The notes below the pieces were generated by a model that was given only the letters and a program-made list of their open reading frames with translations, ran no database searches and was not told where the DNA came from. From assembly GCA_026936335.1 (NCBI GenBank), contig JAPMXV010000001.1, positions 1 to 64,000 of the forward strand: 64,000 nt of DNA, read 5' to 3'. The stretch is from Mantamonas sphyraenae STR306 (lineage: Eukaryota; Protista; CRuMs). The position numbers and the translations under genes were made by a program. Shown piece by piece: positions 11,997 to 19,841 of the stretch; position 1 is the stretch's first letter; each line of letters starts with the position of its first letter.

Positions 11997-13968
11997 TCAC
12001 GCGTAGATCAGGATGCTCTCCATGCTCTCATCCACAAACTCGGGCTCTGCATAGCCCTTGTCCACCTCGTCAAACACCTGCTTAAACACACGGTACACCT
12101 CCAGCGTCATCCGCTCGTCCATCCCTGTGTTCTTAAACTCCACAAACTTTTCCTTGTCCCCCTCGCGAGAATACAGCAGAATCTCAAACGCACAAGCAGA
12201 CGCAAAAACACACGCTCCCTCTTCCTCCATCTGCGCACGCACTCGCGCACGCAACTCGGCCTCCTCCGCCCCAATCTCCTCTTCCTCCACACGATTCACC
12301 GTGCACATCACTCCGTACCCAGTCTCGTCCAGTTCATACTCCAGTGCCATCCCCAGCTTCTTCTCCATCTCGTCCACAAACTTATCCTTCTCCAGCGTGT
12401 CCACAATCTCTCGCACAAGCTCATCCGGCGACAGAATCAGCGAGAACGTCGTCGCCAAGCAGTGCGCCTGGTCGTGGTACTCTGGCAGCAGCGACTCCAT
12501 CGCAGAGCGCATCTTCAGCACTCCTTCGTATTGCGACAGCTCGTCCTTCTCATCCTCCTTCAGCTTCTCCTTCTTTGCGCTGTAGTGCGGCAAGCTCTTT
12601 TCACTCACGTCAAACTCCACCATGTTGGTTTCCTTGTCCACCTTTTGCATCTGTGCAAGCAATGCAAGCAGTGCCTCATCCAGCGTAAACTTCAGCTCCA
12701 CACCCTTTGCCAGCTCGTGGTTCAGCTTGTACAGCGCGCTCCGTTTGATCTTCCGCACGTTCACACGGTCCTCTGCCAGCGGATGCCACATGTCCAGCAG
12801 CAACAGCACGCTTTCCTCTCCGTACACCTCTGCCATTTGCTCGTACGCAGGAAAGTTGCCCACTTTCGACGGCCACCTGTCTGCCGGCGATTCCTCACGA
12901 TAGTTGTCCTTGATGTGCTCGTACGCAGGGTCCAGCGCATTCAGCGTGTTGTGCTTCGGGAACGCCAGCTTGCCTGTCATCAGCTCAAACAGCAGACACC
13001 CAAACGCAAACACGTCATACGGTCGCACGGCGATCTTTGTTTTCGCGTTTGCTGACGAGCTCGACATGGCTTCCGCCACGCGCAGACGCGCCTCCGGATC
13101 GATGTAGTAGTACGTGCCCAGCAGCGCACTGCTTTCGCTTGCCTGCCACATCGCCGCAGATTCCTCCTCACCAAGCAGCTTCGACTCGCCGAAATCGCAA
13201 AACTTCACCGTGCTCTCGTCCGTGCATACCACGTTCTGCGGCTTGATGTCCATGTGTGCAATCTTTTGCTGATGCAGGTACTCCAGCCCTGTGTCCACCG
13301 CACCCACCCGTCACCCAAACCCGCGTGTCAGCCTTCCTTCCACCGGCCCGCAAACGCGACCCTCTTCCACAAACCACACAAATCCAGAACAAACTTCCCG
13401 CGCACCCCCGCTTTCTGCCCAGCTCTCCCCGTTCCCCCTTTCCCCATCCTCTCCCCTACAACACCAAAACCCCCAATCCCAACCCCCTTCCCCTCCCCCA
13501 AACCCCCTTACCATCCACAAGCTGCCGAAACAAACTCTGCACCACCTCCATCGGCTTCAATTCCTCGTTGCCGTCCAAACGCGCAATATGTTTTGTGTAC
13601 ATGTTGCCATGCGTGCCCAGCTCCTGAACCAGATACAACCGGTTGTCGTCCTGAAACACATCCAGAAATTTGACCACATTCGGGTGCGAGCACAACGAAA
13701 GAATCCCTGCTTCCCTCGCAAACTCCTTCACCTGGTGCGCCAGCTTCTTGTTCTTCATCAACACCTTCATACACACCGGTTGCTTTACATTCGTTGCCAC
13801 TGCAGGACACACCAGTCCTCCTCGTGTGCTGTTCCCTCCAAGGCTGTACGGCTGGAACGCCTTCTTTTTGAACAAGCCCCCGCTCTCCACGCTGTGGCCC
13901 GCCTCTTTGCTCGTCACCGCAGATTCGATCAATCGATACGACTTTACTTGCAACTGAGTGTTTCCCAT
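11997..13968 (-). CDS. Divergent protein kinase with possible N-myristoylation (MGNTQ) and a C-terminal extension; exons 13968-13512, 13288-11997
   Basis: VCMK, HPNVVKFLDVF, HMDIKPQN, DFG, GTYYYIDPE, DVFAFG motifs. Degenerate Gly-loop. Phase-1 GTAAGG..CACAG intron. Confidence 0.9.
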
Positions 13969-14013: not shown

Positions 14014-16784
14014 TCACAGAGTCATGTCCGTGCTCGACCCATACCCGCCCGGTGCAATTGCCTTCACGCTGTACTTCTCCTCCATAAACAGTTTCACCTC
14101 TGCAAATGTGCTCAACAGACTCGCTTGCGTCTTCTGCCCAGGCAGCAGCACGCTCCACGCCCCTTTTTCGCTCAAGTAGCGCACGTCCATGTGCATCCTC
14201 TGCCCAGCCATCAGCTGCACGTAATGCGGCAGGTTCTCGCTCAGCCGAGTCACGTATCCTCCTTCTGAGCGTTGGTTCAGCTTCTTCAGCGCCGCCCCGC
14301 TATTCAGAAACTCGTGGAATGTCATCGACTTGTTCACCTCCTCCAGTCGCCCCCAGCAGTCCGGCACATCGCCAAACTTGCATGTAAAGTGTTCAAACAG
14401 CGTTTGACTCACCGGCAGCGTGTCCAGAAAGTCCATGTCGTTGCCCATGGCCTGTTGGTGCGCCGCAAAAACAGACGGAGGCACCAGCGCCGCACGCACC
14501 TTTTGTGACGACACCGTCTTGATGGGCACGTGCGCCGCAAACGCACTCCACTCCACCGTTTCCGCACTCTGAAAGTGCTGCCGCCAAAACACTTTTGCGT
14601 TTGGCAAAGTCAGCTTGCTCTCCTCCTCCACGGTTTCCTCCGGCAGCTCCCACGTCTGCTTTGCCAGCTTCATCAGCTTGGCAAACTTGCTACCGTTGTA
14701 CTGCACCGCCACCTGCCGAATGATTGCCGGATTCCCCTGCATCTTTTCAATCAGCACGTGTTCGCTGAGCACCTCGATCGCCGCCATCCGCACGCCAGCC
14801 CCTTTCACAACGTCCCTCTTCAGCTCACTTGTCGGGATACGATGCTTGTCGCACAGTCGCACAAACAGCCGAGCGCTGTCCAACGCATCCAGACCCCGCA
14901 GTTGATAGTGGTCCGGCGGCCCTTTCATCCTCTCTCGCGTGCTCACCAGAAACATCACCTTCTTCGACTGGATCTCCTCCAACATCTGAAGCATCGTCAC
15001 GCCCGACTCGTTGCTCCCATTGCTCCCATTGCTGCTGCTGCTGCTGCTGCTGCTGCTTGCCCCTGCTCCATCCCCACCCAACACCCTCGGCTCAACACCG
15101 TCCAGAATCACAAGCACCGTCTCCTCCAACTCGTCGCACTCTGCTCGAAACGCAGCCACCCACTCCGCATAGTCCGTCGTCGCCTCTACAGACCCTTGCA
15201 GAACAACATCGTTCAACTCCCGTTGCAGATCCCCCAAAGAGCCCACGATGCTCGACTCCCCGTCCACCAAGTGCACCGTGTCAAACAACGATTGCTCCTG
15301 TGCATACACACGCAGCGCACGTACAAACTCGCTCTTGCCCATCCCTCGCTCTCCGTGCAGGTTGAACACGTTTGTCGTGCTCCGGTCGTCCAACAGCCCC
15401 GCCATCCGATGGTAGCAGTTCAGCACATCCACCGACCGCCCAACAAACGGCGACGGGTAGTCATCCATCGCATGCGATTCCTCCAAAGGGTGTCCGCTCT
15501 CATCGCACAAACCCACCTCTGCGCTTCGTTCACAAAACACGTCCACCTGATCGTGCTTGTACATCTTGGCTTCGCTCATCACAAGGTCCCCTTCCCAGTT
15601 GCGACGCACCCACTTTTCATCCGGCATCAAATGCACATTCTCCGCCCATCCTGCACCAAACACCGCCTCGCCCACAACCTGCACCACCTGCGGCAGCGTC
15701 TCCTGCGTGTTGTGTGCCTCTCCCAGCTTCCTGTACAGCCGCTCGCAAAACTCACGCACATGCCCCAGGTGTGTGTGCCTGTTCTTTGGCCTTGCTGTGT
15801 CCTCAAACGTCAGCACATGCCCAAACCCGGCACGCAGAAACTGCAACCCGACCAAATGCGAGTTCTCCGTCGCAACCACCACCAGCTGGTTAAAGTCGTT
15901 CTCCGCCTCGCTGTCGTCCACATGGATGTCATGCAGCTCAAACACAATCTCTCGCAGCGCGTCCATCTCCTCCTCGCTCAGGCCGTACAGCCGCCCGTCC
16001 TCCAGCTCCAGACCCAACTTCTGCGGGATTCCGTACCCTCCATAATGGATGATGCTTGCGTTCAAACAGCTGTACAGGTTGCGCGCCGTCGCCCTGCACG
16101 AGCGCACCTGGAACGTCTCCACCAGCCCAGGCAACAACGCCTGGTTCAGCGCACGAAAGTTGTACGACTCACGCAGCGGGCTCAGCTGCTCGTCTGCGTT
16201 TGCCAGCGGTGCGTTGCACAACATTGCAATGTCGTATCGTACCTGTGTCCAATCCCACCAGCGCAAACAAACACATCCACCCCGAGTGTCCCCACACGCA
16301 CGCCGGCGTTTGCGTAAGTGACAAAACACCCTCTCGCCGCCCATTCTTCTTGCGCCTTCCAGCCTTCCCCTCTCCCTCAATCTTTCTCACTCACCTGCGG
16401 CACTTCCTCACGCCGAAATTGTTCCCAGTCCACGGGAGGTGGTGGCACCTGAAGCCGCTGCGTCCCGCCCGGCTGAACCTTCCCTTGACTCGCTGGCTGC
16501 TCCTCCTCCTCCGCTACCAGCTCGTACGACACCTGGAACGCAGACTCGGCCTGCTCTGCCACCAGTGCATACTTGTCAAACACCTCCCGGAACGTCACGT
16601 TGTACTGCAGCGGTTCCGGGACCCTTGAGCCCGTGTACAGCTGCAAACCCGTCACTCGGATCGGTCGCCCCAGCTTCCTCGACGCACGCTGCTCCACTTG
16701 CTTCACAAACTCCCCCACTCTCGTCTCCTCCGTCTTCAAAAACTTCACCGGCGTACTCTCCACCGTCAAATGAATCCAAAACAT
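14014..16784 (-). CDS. STAND-A: Ubl-like, CHAT-like, NB-ARC/STAND P-loop NTPase, and EF-hand-linker-SH2 domains; exons 16784-16395, 16242-14014
   Basis: PFVGRSVD, Walker A GERGMGKS, Walker B VLVILDGVE, GNPAII. CHAT-like IIHYGGYG / LVVVATENS. C-terminal FWRQHF..FHEFLNSGAALKKL..GGYVTRLSE resembles the Cbl/Shk-type EF-SH2. Confidence 0.8.
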
Positions 16785-16850
16785 GGCGCCAAACCCTTTT
16801 GTGCGTTGGGTGCCCCACCGCGCCCAGCCGAATTGCCACCCACCGCCACC

Positions 16851-19841
16851 ATGAGCATCCGCCAGGCCAAACAGCTCCGCGTGGTCGACCCTGCCTTCCA
16901 GCAGGTCTACAAGCAGACCCTGTTTCGCAACAGTCCCACCGTCGCCGCCTTCATCGCAGACAAGATCCAGAAGCGGCACAACCGCGAACGCAAACGCAAG
17001 GCCGGCCTCCCTGAAATCGCCATCACGGAACTGTGGGTCGAGCCCAGTTCAGAATCACGCCGCGAAGGCGTCGATCTGCCCGCCCGCAAGCTTGCCGCAG
17101 ACTCTAGCACCGACGACATTAGCGAGGACGAGCTCAACCACCTTGTCGCTTACGGTACGTCCTTGCCCACCCCCACCCCCCTTTCCCCCTCTCGTGTGCA
17201 CAACTCACCTCACACATTGCCCCCCCCTCCCCCCCACACACTCAGTCGAGGGCTCCGAACGCCAAAGCGGGCCAGCTCTTCTCCACTCGGCCATCGATGC
17301 CCAGGAAAACTCTGCCGAATCGACTCTGAGCAATTCCAACAGCCGCGCACAGACACCCTCGGCCGCAACATCCTCATCCTCCACCAATATCACTTCTACC
17401 ACGGAAACAGCCTCCAGCAGCTCCGGCACGGGCTCGGCCGAACAACCTGTGCCGGAGCTCAATGCACCCTCCCCGCACTCCACCACAGACGACTCTACCT
17501 CCCAAAGCAGCAGCAGCAGCACGCGCTCAGACGCGCATTCACCACGTCGCAAACTCTCCCCCACGCCCAAACTTGGCCACACCACACCAGCAGACGACGA
17601 CGACGACGACTCGGCCTTCACCACCTCCGGCCTCGACTCTCAAACCGCCACCAGCACCGAAGCCGAGCTCGTGTGCGTCAAACTCGCAAACCACTCTCTG
17701 TATATTCATTTTCCGCTCAGCGAACGAGTCACCGTACGTCTCCACTCCTTCCCACCTTTGCCGCAAGTGCCCTTTTTACATCGGGGCAGGTGCCAGCCCC
17801 TCTCCCCATGAAACTCACCCTCCTGCGCGTTGTCCCCACACCCCGCCCACAGGAACTTATCGACTCCCTCTCCCGCCAACTGCACCTCCCTGTCTCTGAA
17901 CTCCACTGTGTCGTCAACACCTCGTGCGTTCTCCATATTCGTCCTGGGACATCGCCACTGTCCCTCGCCAAACTGCGTCTGCGCCCTGCTCACAACCCTC
18001 CTCGCTCTCCTCGCACCCCCACCCACACAATCACACCCACACATACACAGTATGTATGACGTCGAGCAGCACATGTGGGCCTGGATCGAACCAGAGCTTA
18101 CCCTTGAAGAAGTGCTCAAAGACAAACCTCTCGGCTCCGACTTTGTCGCCTACGGTACGCTGCTGCTGCGCCCCTACCCTCCACATCATAGCCTGCGTTC
18201 ACTCACGCGTGCCCTCGCCCCTCCCGAATTCCCTCAGTTGGACCGCCCGACGACTGGAAGGCGCAACAAGAAGCTTTGAGCTCCCACTGCGCCCAGATCG
18301 CCTTTCTGCACAACGCCCCGCTTGTCCAACGCAACATAGACGGCCGCATCTCACCCGTACCTCTGTTTCCATTCCAATCAGCCATCGATGCCTACGCCTC
18401 CCTCGTGACAGACTCTTTCGACACATTTGCCGGCCTCTGCACTCGGCGCACCCTGTACAGCCAGCTCAACGCAGAAATCCTCCACTTTGGCGGGGTTGGC
18501 CCTGCTAGTGACAGCATGAGTCTGCCTGTCGTTGATATTCAAGGCTTCTCTGAATCTGTGCCTCTGCAGGAGCTCACCCAGATGATGGAGGCCAGCGGAA
18601 GCAGGCCCACTCTCGTCGTCTGCGCTTGCTCAAATTCCCCTCGAGCCGCTGCCATCTTTTCCAAAATGGGAGTCCCGTACGTCGTCGCCTTCAAGGGAAG
18701 CAGCGAAGGCGAGACGGTGTGGGACCAACAGCACATCCGCCTCTTCCTTCACACCTTTTACTCTGCTCTCGGCAAAGGCGACGCCGTCGCCGACGCCTAC
18801 ACCACGGCCGTCGATCGCACTAGTGTCAAGTGCCAGGTCTCTTCCGACGCATTTATCCTTCTGCCTCGTGGTGTCTCTCTCAACTACCTCTCCCTCACGG
18901 GTGCCTCGTCCAGCGGCGGAAAGGACACCATGCCTCTGCAGGGCCTGGCCCAGCTTCCAGAGTATCCCGAAGACTTTGTAGGCTATTCCTTGGACCTGTA
19001 TTTATTGCTTCGGTGTGCCCGGCTCGAGCAGCTGGTGTACGTGGTTGGCCACGCCGGAATGGGCAAGTCCACGCTGCTCAGTCTGCTGAGTTTGTACGCG
19101 CACGCCGGCTGTTGGTTCCCTGGAGGCGTGCTCTACATCGACGTCAAGTCTCTGGCCAACACCGATTCCCTTGTGGACCAAGTGCTCTCCATTGCTGACT
19201 CCTGGGGCCGCGCAGACCTCGACAGCATGCCTGCAAACACGGTGCTCGAGGCGAGGCGTGACCTTGCTTGGCATCCAACAGGCGGTGGGGCCTCTTCTTC
19301 TGCCAGTGCGACTGTCAACGACTTGGTCCAGGCACTCGAGCGCGCGTCGGGCAGGCAAGGCCCATTGCTCCTCATACTGGACAACTGTGAACCCGACTTG
19401 CAGGCCTTGGACGACCATGTTTCCAATTGGCTCATCGATCACTTGTCCCAGGTCACGCACCTCTGCCCGTTCCTCACCGTGGCCGTCAGCTGCAGCGAGG
19501 AACCAACGCTGAGTAGCAATACCACCCTGTCCTCCTCCTTCTCATCATCGGGCTCTCTCAGTGTCACAAACGGCGGTGTTTCTGGCAGTGGAAATGCCAT
19601 GCAGGAGGATGGCCAGTCCAACGTCCTGCACCTGCGGGGGCTGCAGGGTACAGATGCAGCGCAGCTCCTCTCCAAGCTGGCTCAACCCACAGAGCTCTGC
19701 GACAGCACAGGCTTGCAGCTTCGCGTGGAACAGGTGGCCGCTTTGCCACTGTTTGCCAAACACACGCTGTCACCATCGCGCATTGCTGATTTGGCTGCGC
19801 AAGTGAAGAGCGGCGTTGCGGTCGACCGATTGGCAAGGTGA
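16851..19841 (+). CDS. STAND-B: two Ubl-like modules, CHAT-like domain and STAND NTPase; exons 16851-17154, 17246-17733, 17853-17923, 18051-18154, 18238-19841
   Basis: gccaccATG start and four phase-consistent GT-AG introns. DFVGYSLD, Walker A GHAGMGKS, WFPGGVLYID, Walker B LLILDNCE. CHAT-like ILHFGGVG / LVVCACSNS. Confidence 0.8.

Follow-up and report, generated by a model that had tools for sequence, protein, structure and literature searches.

The window analysed here comprises 64,000 nucleotides of the protist Mantamonas sphyraenae STR306 (CRuMs), positions 1 to 64,000 of the forward strand of contig JAPMXV010000001.1 (assembly GCA_026936335.1), hereafter contig C1. Within this window, positions 14014 to 19841 extend exactly from the TGA stop codon of a minus-strand gene, gene A, to the TGA stop codon of a plus-strand gene, gene B, the two being transcribed divergently from closely spaced start codons. 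Both gene products are predicted to carry a CHAT-type caspase-like fold followed by a STAND NTPase, and they belong to a family of NLR-like switch proteins that is apparently undescribed so far. The observations of a preliminary description of this locus, made from the sequence alone, are confirmed below, and its interpretation as a paired immune or signalling module is partly supported.

Gene models and transcripts

Gene A begins at an ATG at 16784 and encodes 872 amino acids (aa) in two exons separated by a single GT..AG intron. Exon 1 (16395–16784, minus strand) supplies 130 aa, comprising a candidate ubiquitin-like (beta-grasp) domain at the N-terminus followed by a PPPPVDWEQ motif, and aligns with the N-termini of the paralogues C51 and C49c, described below; Atlas gives weak leads from this exon to beta-grasp domains such as Par3 N-terminal, CIDE-N and TDP-43_N, with scores of 0.82–0.90. 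The phase 0 intron (16243–16394) is spliced out in a contig of sequencing run X3. Exon 2 (14014–16242 including the stop codon, coding 14017–16242) contributes 742 codons for the CHAT-like, NTPase, EF-hand-like and SH2 domains, and the X3 contigs are colinear with it except at a 48-nt coding repeat. This repeat (15022–15069) encodes a Ser/Asn/Gly run, and the contigs of every run break there.

Gene B begins at an ATG at 16851 and encodes 856 aa in five exons, with all four introns of the GT..AG type. Exon 1 (16851–17154, plus strand; 101 codons plus 1 nt) encodes an extra N-terminal module, for which no Pfam match was found, and exon 2 (17246–17733) a Ser/Thr-rich linker followed by the start of a candidate ubiquitin-like domain, the middle and end of which are encoded by exon 3 (17853–17923) and exon 4 (18051–18154), respectively. 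Exon 5 (18238–19841 including the stop codon, coding 18238–19838) encodes a PPDDW motif, the CHAT-like domain and the NTPase, and no C-terminal domain. The five exons and the stop codon lie together on a single X3 contig. Exons 1 and 4 resemble one another at their ends (17140–17160 and 18140–18160), which read ..HLVAY/G and ..DFVAY/G (the slash marking the exon boundary) and are both followed by gtacg; the preceding LWVEP and AWIEP are also alike. This resemblance suggests that the last exon of the ubiquitin-like module of gene B was duplicated internally.

No run is labelled as RNA and run X3 is recorded as 'DNA?', yet it carries five exact GT..AG exon junctions over 14014–19841; since spliced forms of both genes occur among its contigs, X3 behaves in effect as a transcriptome. 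Expression of A and B is accordingly taken here as the presence of spliced contigs in X3, contig depth not being used as a measure. These contigs confirm the divergent gene pair of the preliminary description, with start codons separated by a 66-bp spacer (16785–16850). The contig of gene A ends at 16787 and that of gene B starts at 16852, each within 3 nt of the respective ATG, placing the 5′ ends of both genes in or beside the spacer. This implies very short 5′ untranslated regions or falling coverage, and the spacer must hold the core promoters of both genes. A spliced leader was considered as the cause of contigs ending at the start codons and was ruled out, as the contigs bear no extra letters. 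A second in-frame ATG for gene B is located at 16770–16772, 81 nt upstream of 16851, and would, if used, create a head-to-head coding overlap of 15 nt with gene A; the X3 contig stops short of it.

Homology and domain folds of the two proteins

The large exons of the two genes (A exon 2 and B exon 5) are homologous, sharing 26% identity over 370 aa (BLASTP 2e-14), in agreement with the proposal that A and B are diverged paralogues. All of the motif pairs quoted in support of that proposal were found, including IIHYGGYG (A exon-2 residues 64–71) and ILHFGGVG (B exon-5 residues 80–87), GERGMGKS (A exon-2 residues 297–304) and GHAGMGKS (B exon-5 residues 270–277), ILDGVE and ILDNCE, FVGRSVD and FVGYSLD, PPPVDWEQ and GPPDDWKA, and LRGLDALDSARL in A and LRGLQGTDAAQL in B. 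The PPxDW motif located just upstream of the CHAT domain is present in both A and B and was not seen in the upstream exons read of other Mantamonas units.

Spliced proteins were searched exon by exon, and folds were predicted for the two large exons alone using AF2 with family alignments (A exon 2: pLDDT 82.3, pTM 0.71; B exon 5: pLDDT 82.5, pTM 0.85). The predicted folds were compared with structural representatives by VIA search, and that of A also by Foldseek. Domain calls for A and B rest on their paralogues, the family profile and these folds. Pfam searches of A and B themselves returned no CHAT match, even at E ≤ 1, and no SH2 match, with weak P-loop/NB-ARC/NACHT matches and scores of 0.027 for Cbl_N2 in A and 3.8e-9 for AAA_16 in B. 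In the profile check suggested by the preliminary description, CHAT, NB-ARC/NACHT and SH2 exceed their cut-offs in the paralogues, and CHAT and SH2 give no match in A and B. No LRR, TPR or WD repeat was matched by Pfam in either protein, as the preliminary description had stated.

The predicted CHAT-fold pseudo-protease domain of A (15520–16242, minus strand; model residues 1–241) matches 8tl0_A, the structure of an activated SAVED-CHAT filament, with a VIA Z score of 16.9 and a root-mean-square deviation (rmsd) of 3.3 over 194 residues, and that of B (18285–18917, plus strand; model residues 16–226) matches the same structure with a Z score of 18.2 and an rmsd of 3.1 over 188 residues. Further VIA matches of the B domain include the CHAT domain of DdvA (Z 12.4), separase (11.4) and Craspase (10.8), as well as gingipain. 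The region that follows is modelled in both proteins as the nucleotide-binding and first helical domains of a STAND NTPase. In A (14638–15477, minus strand; model residues 256 to approximately 540) its VIA matches are ZAR1 (Z 16.4), MalT (15.2), NRC2 (15.1), CED-4 (14.7) and Apaf-1 (12.8), and plant resistosomes are the top Foldseek matches; in B (18933–19838, plus strand; model residues 232–533) they are MalT (14.1), Apaf-1 (13.8), ZAR1 (13.4), CED-4 (12.7) and Avs3 (12.3). These matches, with Z scores of approximately 13 to 16 against NLR/Apaf-1-type NTPases, uphold the assignment of CHAT and STAND domains to both proteins.

The C-terminal portion of A is modelled as an EF-hand-like helical domain of the Cbl/STAT type (14341–14622, minus strand) directly before an SH2 domain (14041–14340, minus strand; exon-2 residues 635–734). 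Model residues 541–730 match the Cbl TKB domain 6xar_A (VIA Z 11.9), and Foldseek matches A to the Cbl-c TKB domain 3vrr at 2e-6. The SH2 domain matches that of SAP (1ka6; Z 12.4, rmsd 2.1 over 97 residues) along with the SH2 domains of STAP-1, Csk and SHP2, and the Arg of its YVTRLS motif (14239–14256) aligns with FL[IL]R[LF]S of six paralogues at beta-B5, the FLVRES position of the phosphotyrosine-binding Arg. Protein B has no EF-SH2 region; its stop codon lies inside the transcript contig and the protein extends no further than the first helical domain of the NTPase, finishing approximately 20 residues past the GxP-like motif, where A has approximately 35 residues between this motif and the EF-hand-like domain. 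The predicted folds and family homology support CHAT and STAND domains in both proteins and EF-SH2 in A alone, and the asymmetry noted in the preliminary description, with EF-SH2 at the end of A and extra N-terminal exons in B, is borne out.

Catalytic and nucleotide-binding motifs

Motif columns were read in a 104-sequence family alignment. The CHAT catalytic His column holds His in 91 of 97 sequences, but Tyr in A (HYGGYG, 16030–16053, minus strand) and Val in B (HFGGVG, 18477–18500, plus strand). Similarly, the catalytic Cys column holds Cys in 96 of 104 sequences, but Glu in A (VATENS, 15859–15882, minus strand) and Ser in B (CACSNS, 18615–18638, plus strand), where a Cys is found one position earlier. 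The nucleotide-binding motifs are intact in both proteins, as Walker A (GxxGxGK[ST]) and Walker B (hhhhD), the columns of which are conserved in 94–103 of the 104 sequences, read GERGMGKS (15331–15354) and LVILDGVE (15091–15114) on the minus strand in A and GHAGMGKS (19047–19070) and LLILDNCE (19368–19391) on the plus strand in B; A also has a GxP-like motif, GNPAIIRQ (14713–14736, minus strand). Because the His/Cys dyad is lost in both A and B, they are predicted to be inactive pseudo-proteases, and because Walker A and B are intact, they are likely switch subunits whose nucleotide switches apparently work. The role of caspase-fold effector that the preliminary description gave to their CHAT domains does not hold here, and with the dyad lost no obvious executor is left between A and B, a role that the helper fills in plant NLR pairs.

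The CHAT-STAND family in the genome and beyond

The genome comprises 25,061,354 bases in 78 contigs, in agreement with the assembly published for Mantamonas sphyraenae (25.06 Mb, 78 contigs, GC content 59.19%, 9,416 genes; PMC10492846). A profile built from eight paralogues identified at least 11 CHAT-STAND units in it, distributed over contigs C1 (two, A and B), C3 (one), C5 (two, fused), C13 (one), C49 (three within 17 kb), C51 (one) and C73 (one). In the less diverged paralogues, CHAT, NACHT/NB-ARC, Cbl_N2 (EF-hand-like) and SH2 score above curated Pfam cut-offs, with CHAT (PF12770) reaching 38.2 bits in C13 and 24.3 bits in C51 against a cut-off of 24 bits; A and B are homologous to both of these. 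The longest NB-ARC match seen, that in C51, ends at position 203 of the 248-position Pfam profile. The architecture of the family is a candidate ubiquitin-like N-terminus, a CHAT caspase-fold protease, a STAND NTPase, an EF-hand-like domain and an SH2 domain.

Searched against PDB sequences, the family profile matched the Dictyostelium STATa linker-SH2 structure 1uur (7.9e-18), AfsR (2.3e-15), CHAT 8tl0 (7.4e-15) and Cbl (6e-11). Word-indexed searches with exons of A and B matched nothing at E ≤ 0.001, and the family beyond this genome came to light only by exhaustive profile search; among 1.84 billion representative proteins this search returned 807 matches at E ≤ 1e-30 and 6,221 at E ≤ 1e-10, with the EF-SH2 part also covered in approximately 26 of the best 150. 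The best outside match is a Mantamonas plastica transcript, and the named sources of relatives also include the foraminifer Nonionella stella, the cercozoan Mataza, the chlorarachniophyte Norrisiella and MMETSP transcriptomes. Full-text literature searches turned up no account of a CHAT-STAND-SH2 architecture.

Based on motif reading, six units look active (C13, C49 at 453 kb, C49 at 467 kb, C51, C73 and the first C5 unit) and five look degenerate (A, B, C3, C49 at 460 kb and the second C5 unit). Linkage to other units is common among the degenerate ones, with an active/degenerate/active series on C49, a fusion of an active and a degenerate unit on C5, and two degenerate units on C1. The C49 cluster (453015–469517) consists of three family genes on the plus, minus and plus strands; its central gene is degenerate (HLYGRS, LLENC), and its two flanking genes look active. 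The C5 gene (274959–282119, minus strand) is an uninterrupted open reading frame (ORF) of 2387 aa with two units; the dyad is canonical in the first (HYSGHG, SACHS) and degenerate in the second (HLSCNG, CSLYS). This fusion is a hint, of the Rosetta-stone type, that family units work together. A TPR-like helical region is located between the two C5 units. The C49 genes at 460 kb (minus) and 467 kb (plus) were considered as a second head-to-head pair and rejected; although divergent, they are separated by approximately 3.3 kb that contains other minus-strand ORFs.

Origin of the head-to-head arrangement

With approximately 11 family genes among 9,416, only about 0.01 chance neighbours are expected, so a local inverted duplication is needed to account for the adjacency of A and B, which is non-random and explained by such an event. 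Either this event dates far back or A and B have evolved at a very high rate. In trees, they group with C3 on long branches and with low support (65/73), and the AU test is compatible with A and B forming a clade of their own (p-AU 0.35). In a genome of 25 Mb and 9,416 genes such as this one, 66 bp between divergent ATGs is an ordinary distance. On the other side of gene A, the ATG of a kinase gene is found 45 nt past the gene A stop codon, in tandem and in the same frame. A complex prediction restricted to the CHAT-like domains (A residues 1–250 with B residues 1–235) gave a score of 0.08 against a mark of 0.34, which counts neither for nor against binding between A and B.

Proposed role of the gene pair and alternatives

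The reading we favour, with a probability of approximately 0.5, is that A and B are co-expressed NTP-switch subunits without catalytic activity, serving to nucleate, bridge or dampen oligomers of the family. In canonical members, the C-terminal EF-SH2 region, occupying the position of the sensor repeats of NLRs, would read a phosphotyrosine ligand, the NTPase would next drive oligomerisation, and proximity would then activate the CHAT protease. CHAT proteases can be switched on by oligomerisation, as SAVED-CHAT shows and as the title of entry 8tl0 suggests. A would retain the SH2 reader, while B would be reduced to a pseudo-CHAT domain and an NTPase, and both are probably made together from one 66-bp bidirectional promoter region. 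We infer that A and B could co-assemble with each other, with the six catalytically intact paralogues, or with both, acting as nucleators, adaptors or dampeners in a manner comparable to that of pseudo-caspases such as cFLIP for caspase-8. The data establish the gene models and their expression, the homology, the folds, the state of the motifs and the size of the family; the gating by phosphotyrosine, the oligomerisation and any contacts of A with B or of either with the paralogues are inferred.

Several findings weigh against this reading. The spacing is matched in the C13 family member, where approximately 50 bp separate its ATG from that of a divergent, unrelated SNF2-type helicase gene (C13:241256 and 241307), and all four distant family members located on long contigs of other organisms are without an adjoining paralogue. 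For the SH2 domain of A, ligand binding is an assumption based on a single conserved Arg. Downstream of the NTPase, neither A nor B showed a recognisable winged-helix domain, no domain-level fold search having been run, and the regulatory logic may differ from that of classical STAND proteins. The branches leading to A and B are approximately 3 substitutions per site, which is compatible both with relaxed constraint and with an arms race; in contrast, the C49 gene at 467 kb and its close orthologue in M. plastica have branches of 0.16 and 0.19. Finally, no orthologue of A or B was found elsewhere at E ≤ 0.001 in word-indexed protein searches with the whole of A exon 2, A residues 1–385 and B residues 1–335 as queries.

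The paired-NLR-like module of the preliminary description corresponds to a stricter proposal, in which A, with its SH2 domain, senses and B transduces as an obligate pair, the two forming a dedicated hetero-oligomer like RGA5/RGA4 or RRS1/RPS4. What stands of that description is a set of expressed, head-to-head paralogues with a shared 66-bp promoter region, and the complementary layout (EF-SH2 in A only, extra N-terminal exons in B only), the loss of the same catalytic His in both, their private PPxDW motif and the fused double unit on C5, which hints that units can act in pairs, would all suit a sensor and its helper. However, neither protein keeps an active effector domain, the sole other candidate output being the putative ubiquitin-like region at the N-terminus, and both P-loops are intact, whereas plant sensor NLR partners often have degenerate P-loops. 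Together with the ordinary spacing and the four unpaired distant relatives, this makes an obligate sensor/helper pair unlikely. About as likely, and likewise doubtful, is a purely historic adjacency, whereby A and B stem from an old local inverted duplication and now act independently, for example as separate modulators or with an unrelated role, and the spacer reflects normal compactness. The small chance expectation calls for a duplication and nothing further, the family clusters on C49 too, short intergenic distances are shared with unrelated genes (the divergent spacer of approximately 50 bp on C13 and the 45-nt tandem gap to the kinase gene), and only 26% identity is left between A and B. 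Nevertheless, that A and B lost the same catalytic residue in parallel, complement each other in domain content and have stayed side by side despite extreme divergence is mildly suggestive of linked function.

It is also conceivable that A and B are decaying copies on their way to becoming pseudogenes after loss of the protease, consistent with their very long branches, the loss of the dyad and the lack of close orthologues in the searches made. This is very improbable given uninterrupted frames of 872 and 856 codons that are correctly spliced and both expressed, the conservation of Walker A, Walker B and most fold-defining columns, and confident AF2 models. At the other extreme, the favoured reading of non-catalytic switch subunits can be extended to a phosphotyrosine-gated, apoptosome-like protease system of deep-branching protists, of which A and B would be the dedicated non-catalytic nucleator/adaptor pair; A would read phosphotyrosine and recruit B, and the pair would seed or restrain polymerisation of the active paralogues. 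We consider this extension improbable, though if true it would represent a network similar to NAIP/NLRC4 or cFLIP that arose independently of animal and plant NLRs.

Comparison with known systems

The caspase-like fold of A and B is common to the CHAT proteases (PF12770), including the SAVED-CHAT protease of type III CRISPR (8tl0), Craspase Csx29, DdvA and separase. A and B differ from these in lacking the catalytic His and Cys, in being eukaryotic and intron-bearing, and in having as their switch a fused STAND NTPase rather than a SAVED cyclic-oligonucleotide sensor or a TPR/Cas partner. With the STAND/NLR proteins (Apaf-1, CED-4, Dark, ZAR1/NRC/Sr35, MalT, AfsR and Avs) they have in common the nucleotide-binding and first helical domains, Walker A and B, a GxP-like motif, and a layout in which an effector-type domain is N-terminal and a ligand-reader C-terminal. 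STAND/NLR switches normally read ligands by LRR, WD40 or TPR repeats and signal by death-fold, TIR or CC domains. In A and B, by contrast, no such repeats and no winged-helix/MHD region were recognised, the sensor position is occupied by EF-hand-like and SH2 domains in A and by nothing in B, and the N-terminal domain is CHAT rather than CARD, CC, TIR or PYD.

The plant paired NLRs RGA4/RGA5 and RPS4/RRS1 are likewise head-to-head STAND paralogues with a short shared promoter region and unequal domains. However, the plant helper retains a working signalling domain, whereas both CHAT domains appear dead in A and B, which also have no integrated decoy and whose tight spacing is normal in this genome. 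The C-terminal module of A resembles those of Cbl TKB and the STAT linker-SH2 (Dictyostelium STATa, 1uur), in which an EF-hand-like domain is packed before an SH2 domain that keeps the phosphotyrosine-binding Arg; in A the fusion partner of this module is a protease-NTPase and not a RING ligase or DNA-binding domain, and the module is too diverged for a Pfam SH2 match. Pseudo-caspases such as cFLIP are catalytically dead paralogues of a proximity-activated clan-CD protease and could tune assembly of the active enzyme. The likeness to A and B is a proposed functional analogy, as cFLIP uses death-effector domains and is without an NTPase.

The family is more remarkable than the A/B pair, for which functional coupling is a hypothesis and tight spacing is ordinary. 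A Cbl/STAT-type EF-hand-SH2 module in the sensor position and a CHAT protease in the effector position characterise a family with hundreds of members, those named being from Mantamonas (CRuMs) and Rhizaria. If the proposed logic is true, a connection between phosphotyrosine signalling and regulated proteolysis or cell death would exist well beyond animals, and the mix of active and dead units, with a head-to-head dead pair and a fused active and dead protein, would be a natural system for pseudo-enzyme regulation of NLR-like assemblies.

Phosphotyrosine-signalling genes and the neighbouring kinase gene

The genome encodes a phosphotyrosine toolkit with at least 119 PK_Tyr_Ser-Thr-type kinase matches, at least 11 classical PTP profile matches and at least 13 SH2 loci, five of them within the CHAT-STAND family; all of these counts are lower bounds. 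The kinase gene adjoining gene A (11997–13968, minus strand) has Pfam Pkinase matches in both exons and is of the Ser/Thr type based on its HMDIKPQN motif, and its product begins with MGNTQ, a possible myristoylation signal. On contig C42 (396985–398181, plus strand), SH2 and PK_Tyr_Ser-Thr kinase matches are found in a single ORF of 1354 aa, the product of which, an SH2-kinase fusion, may write or read the presumed phosphotyrosine signal.

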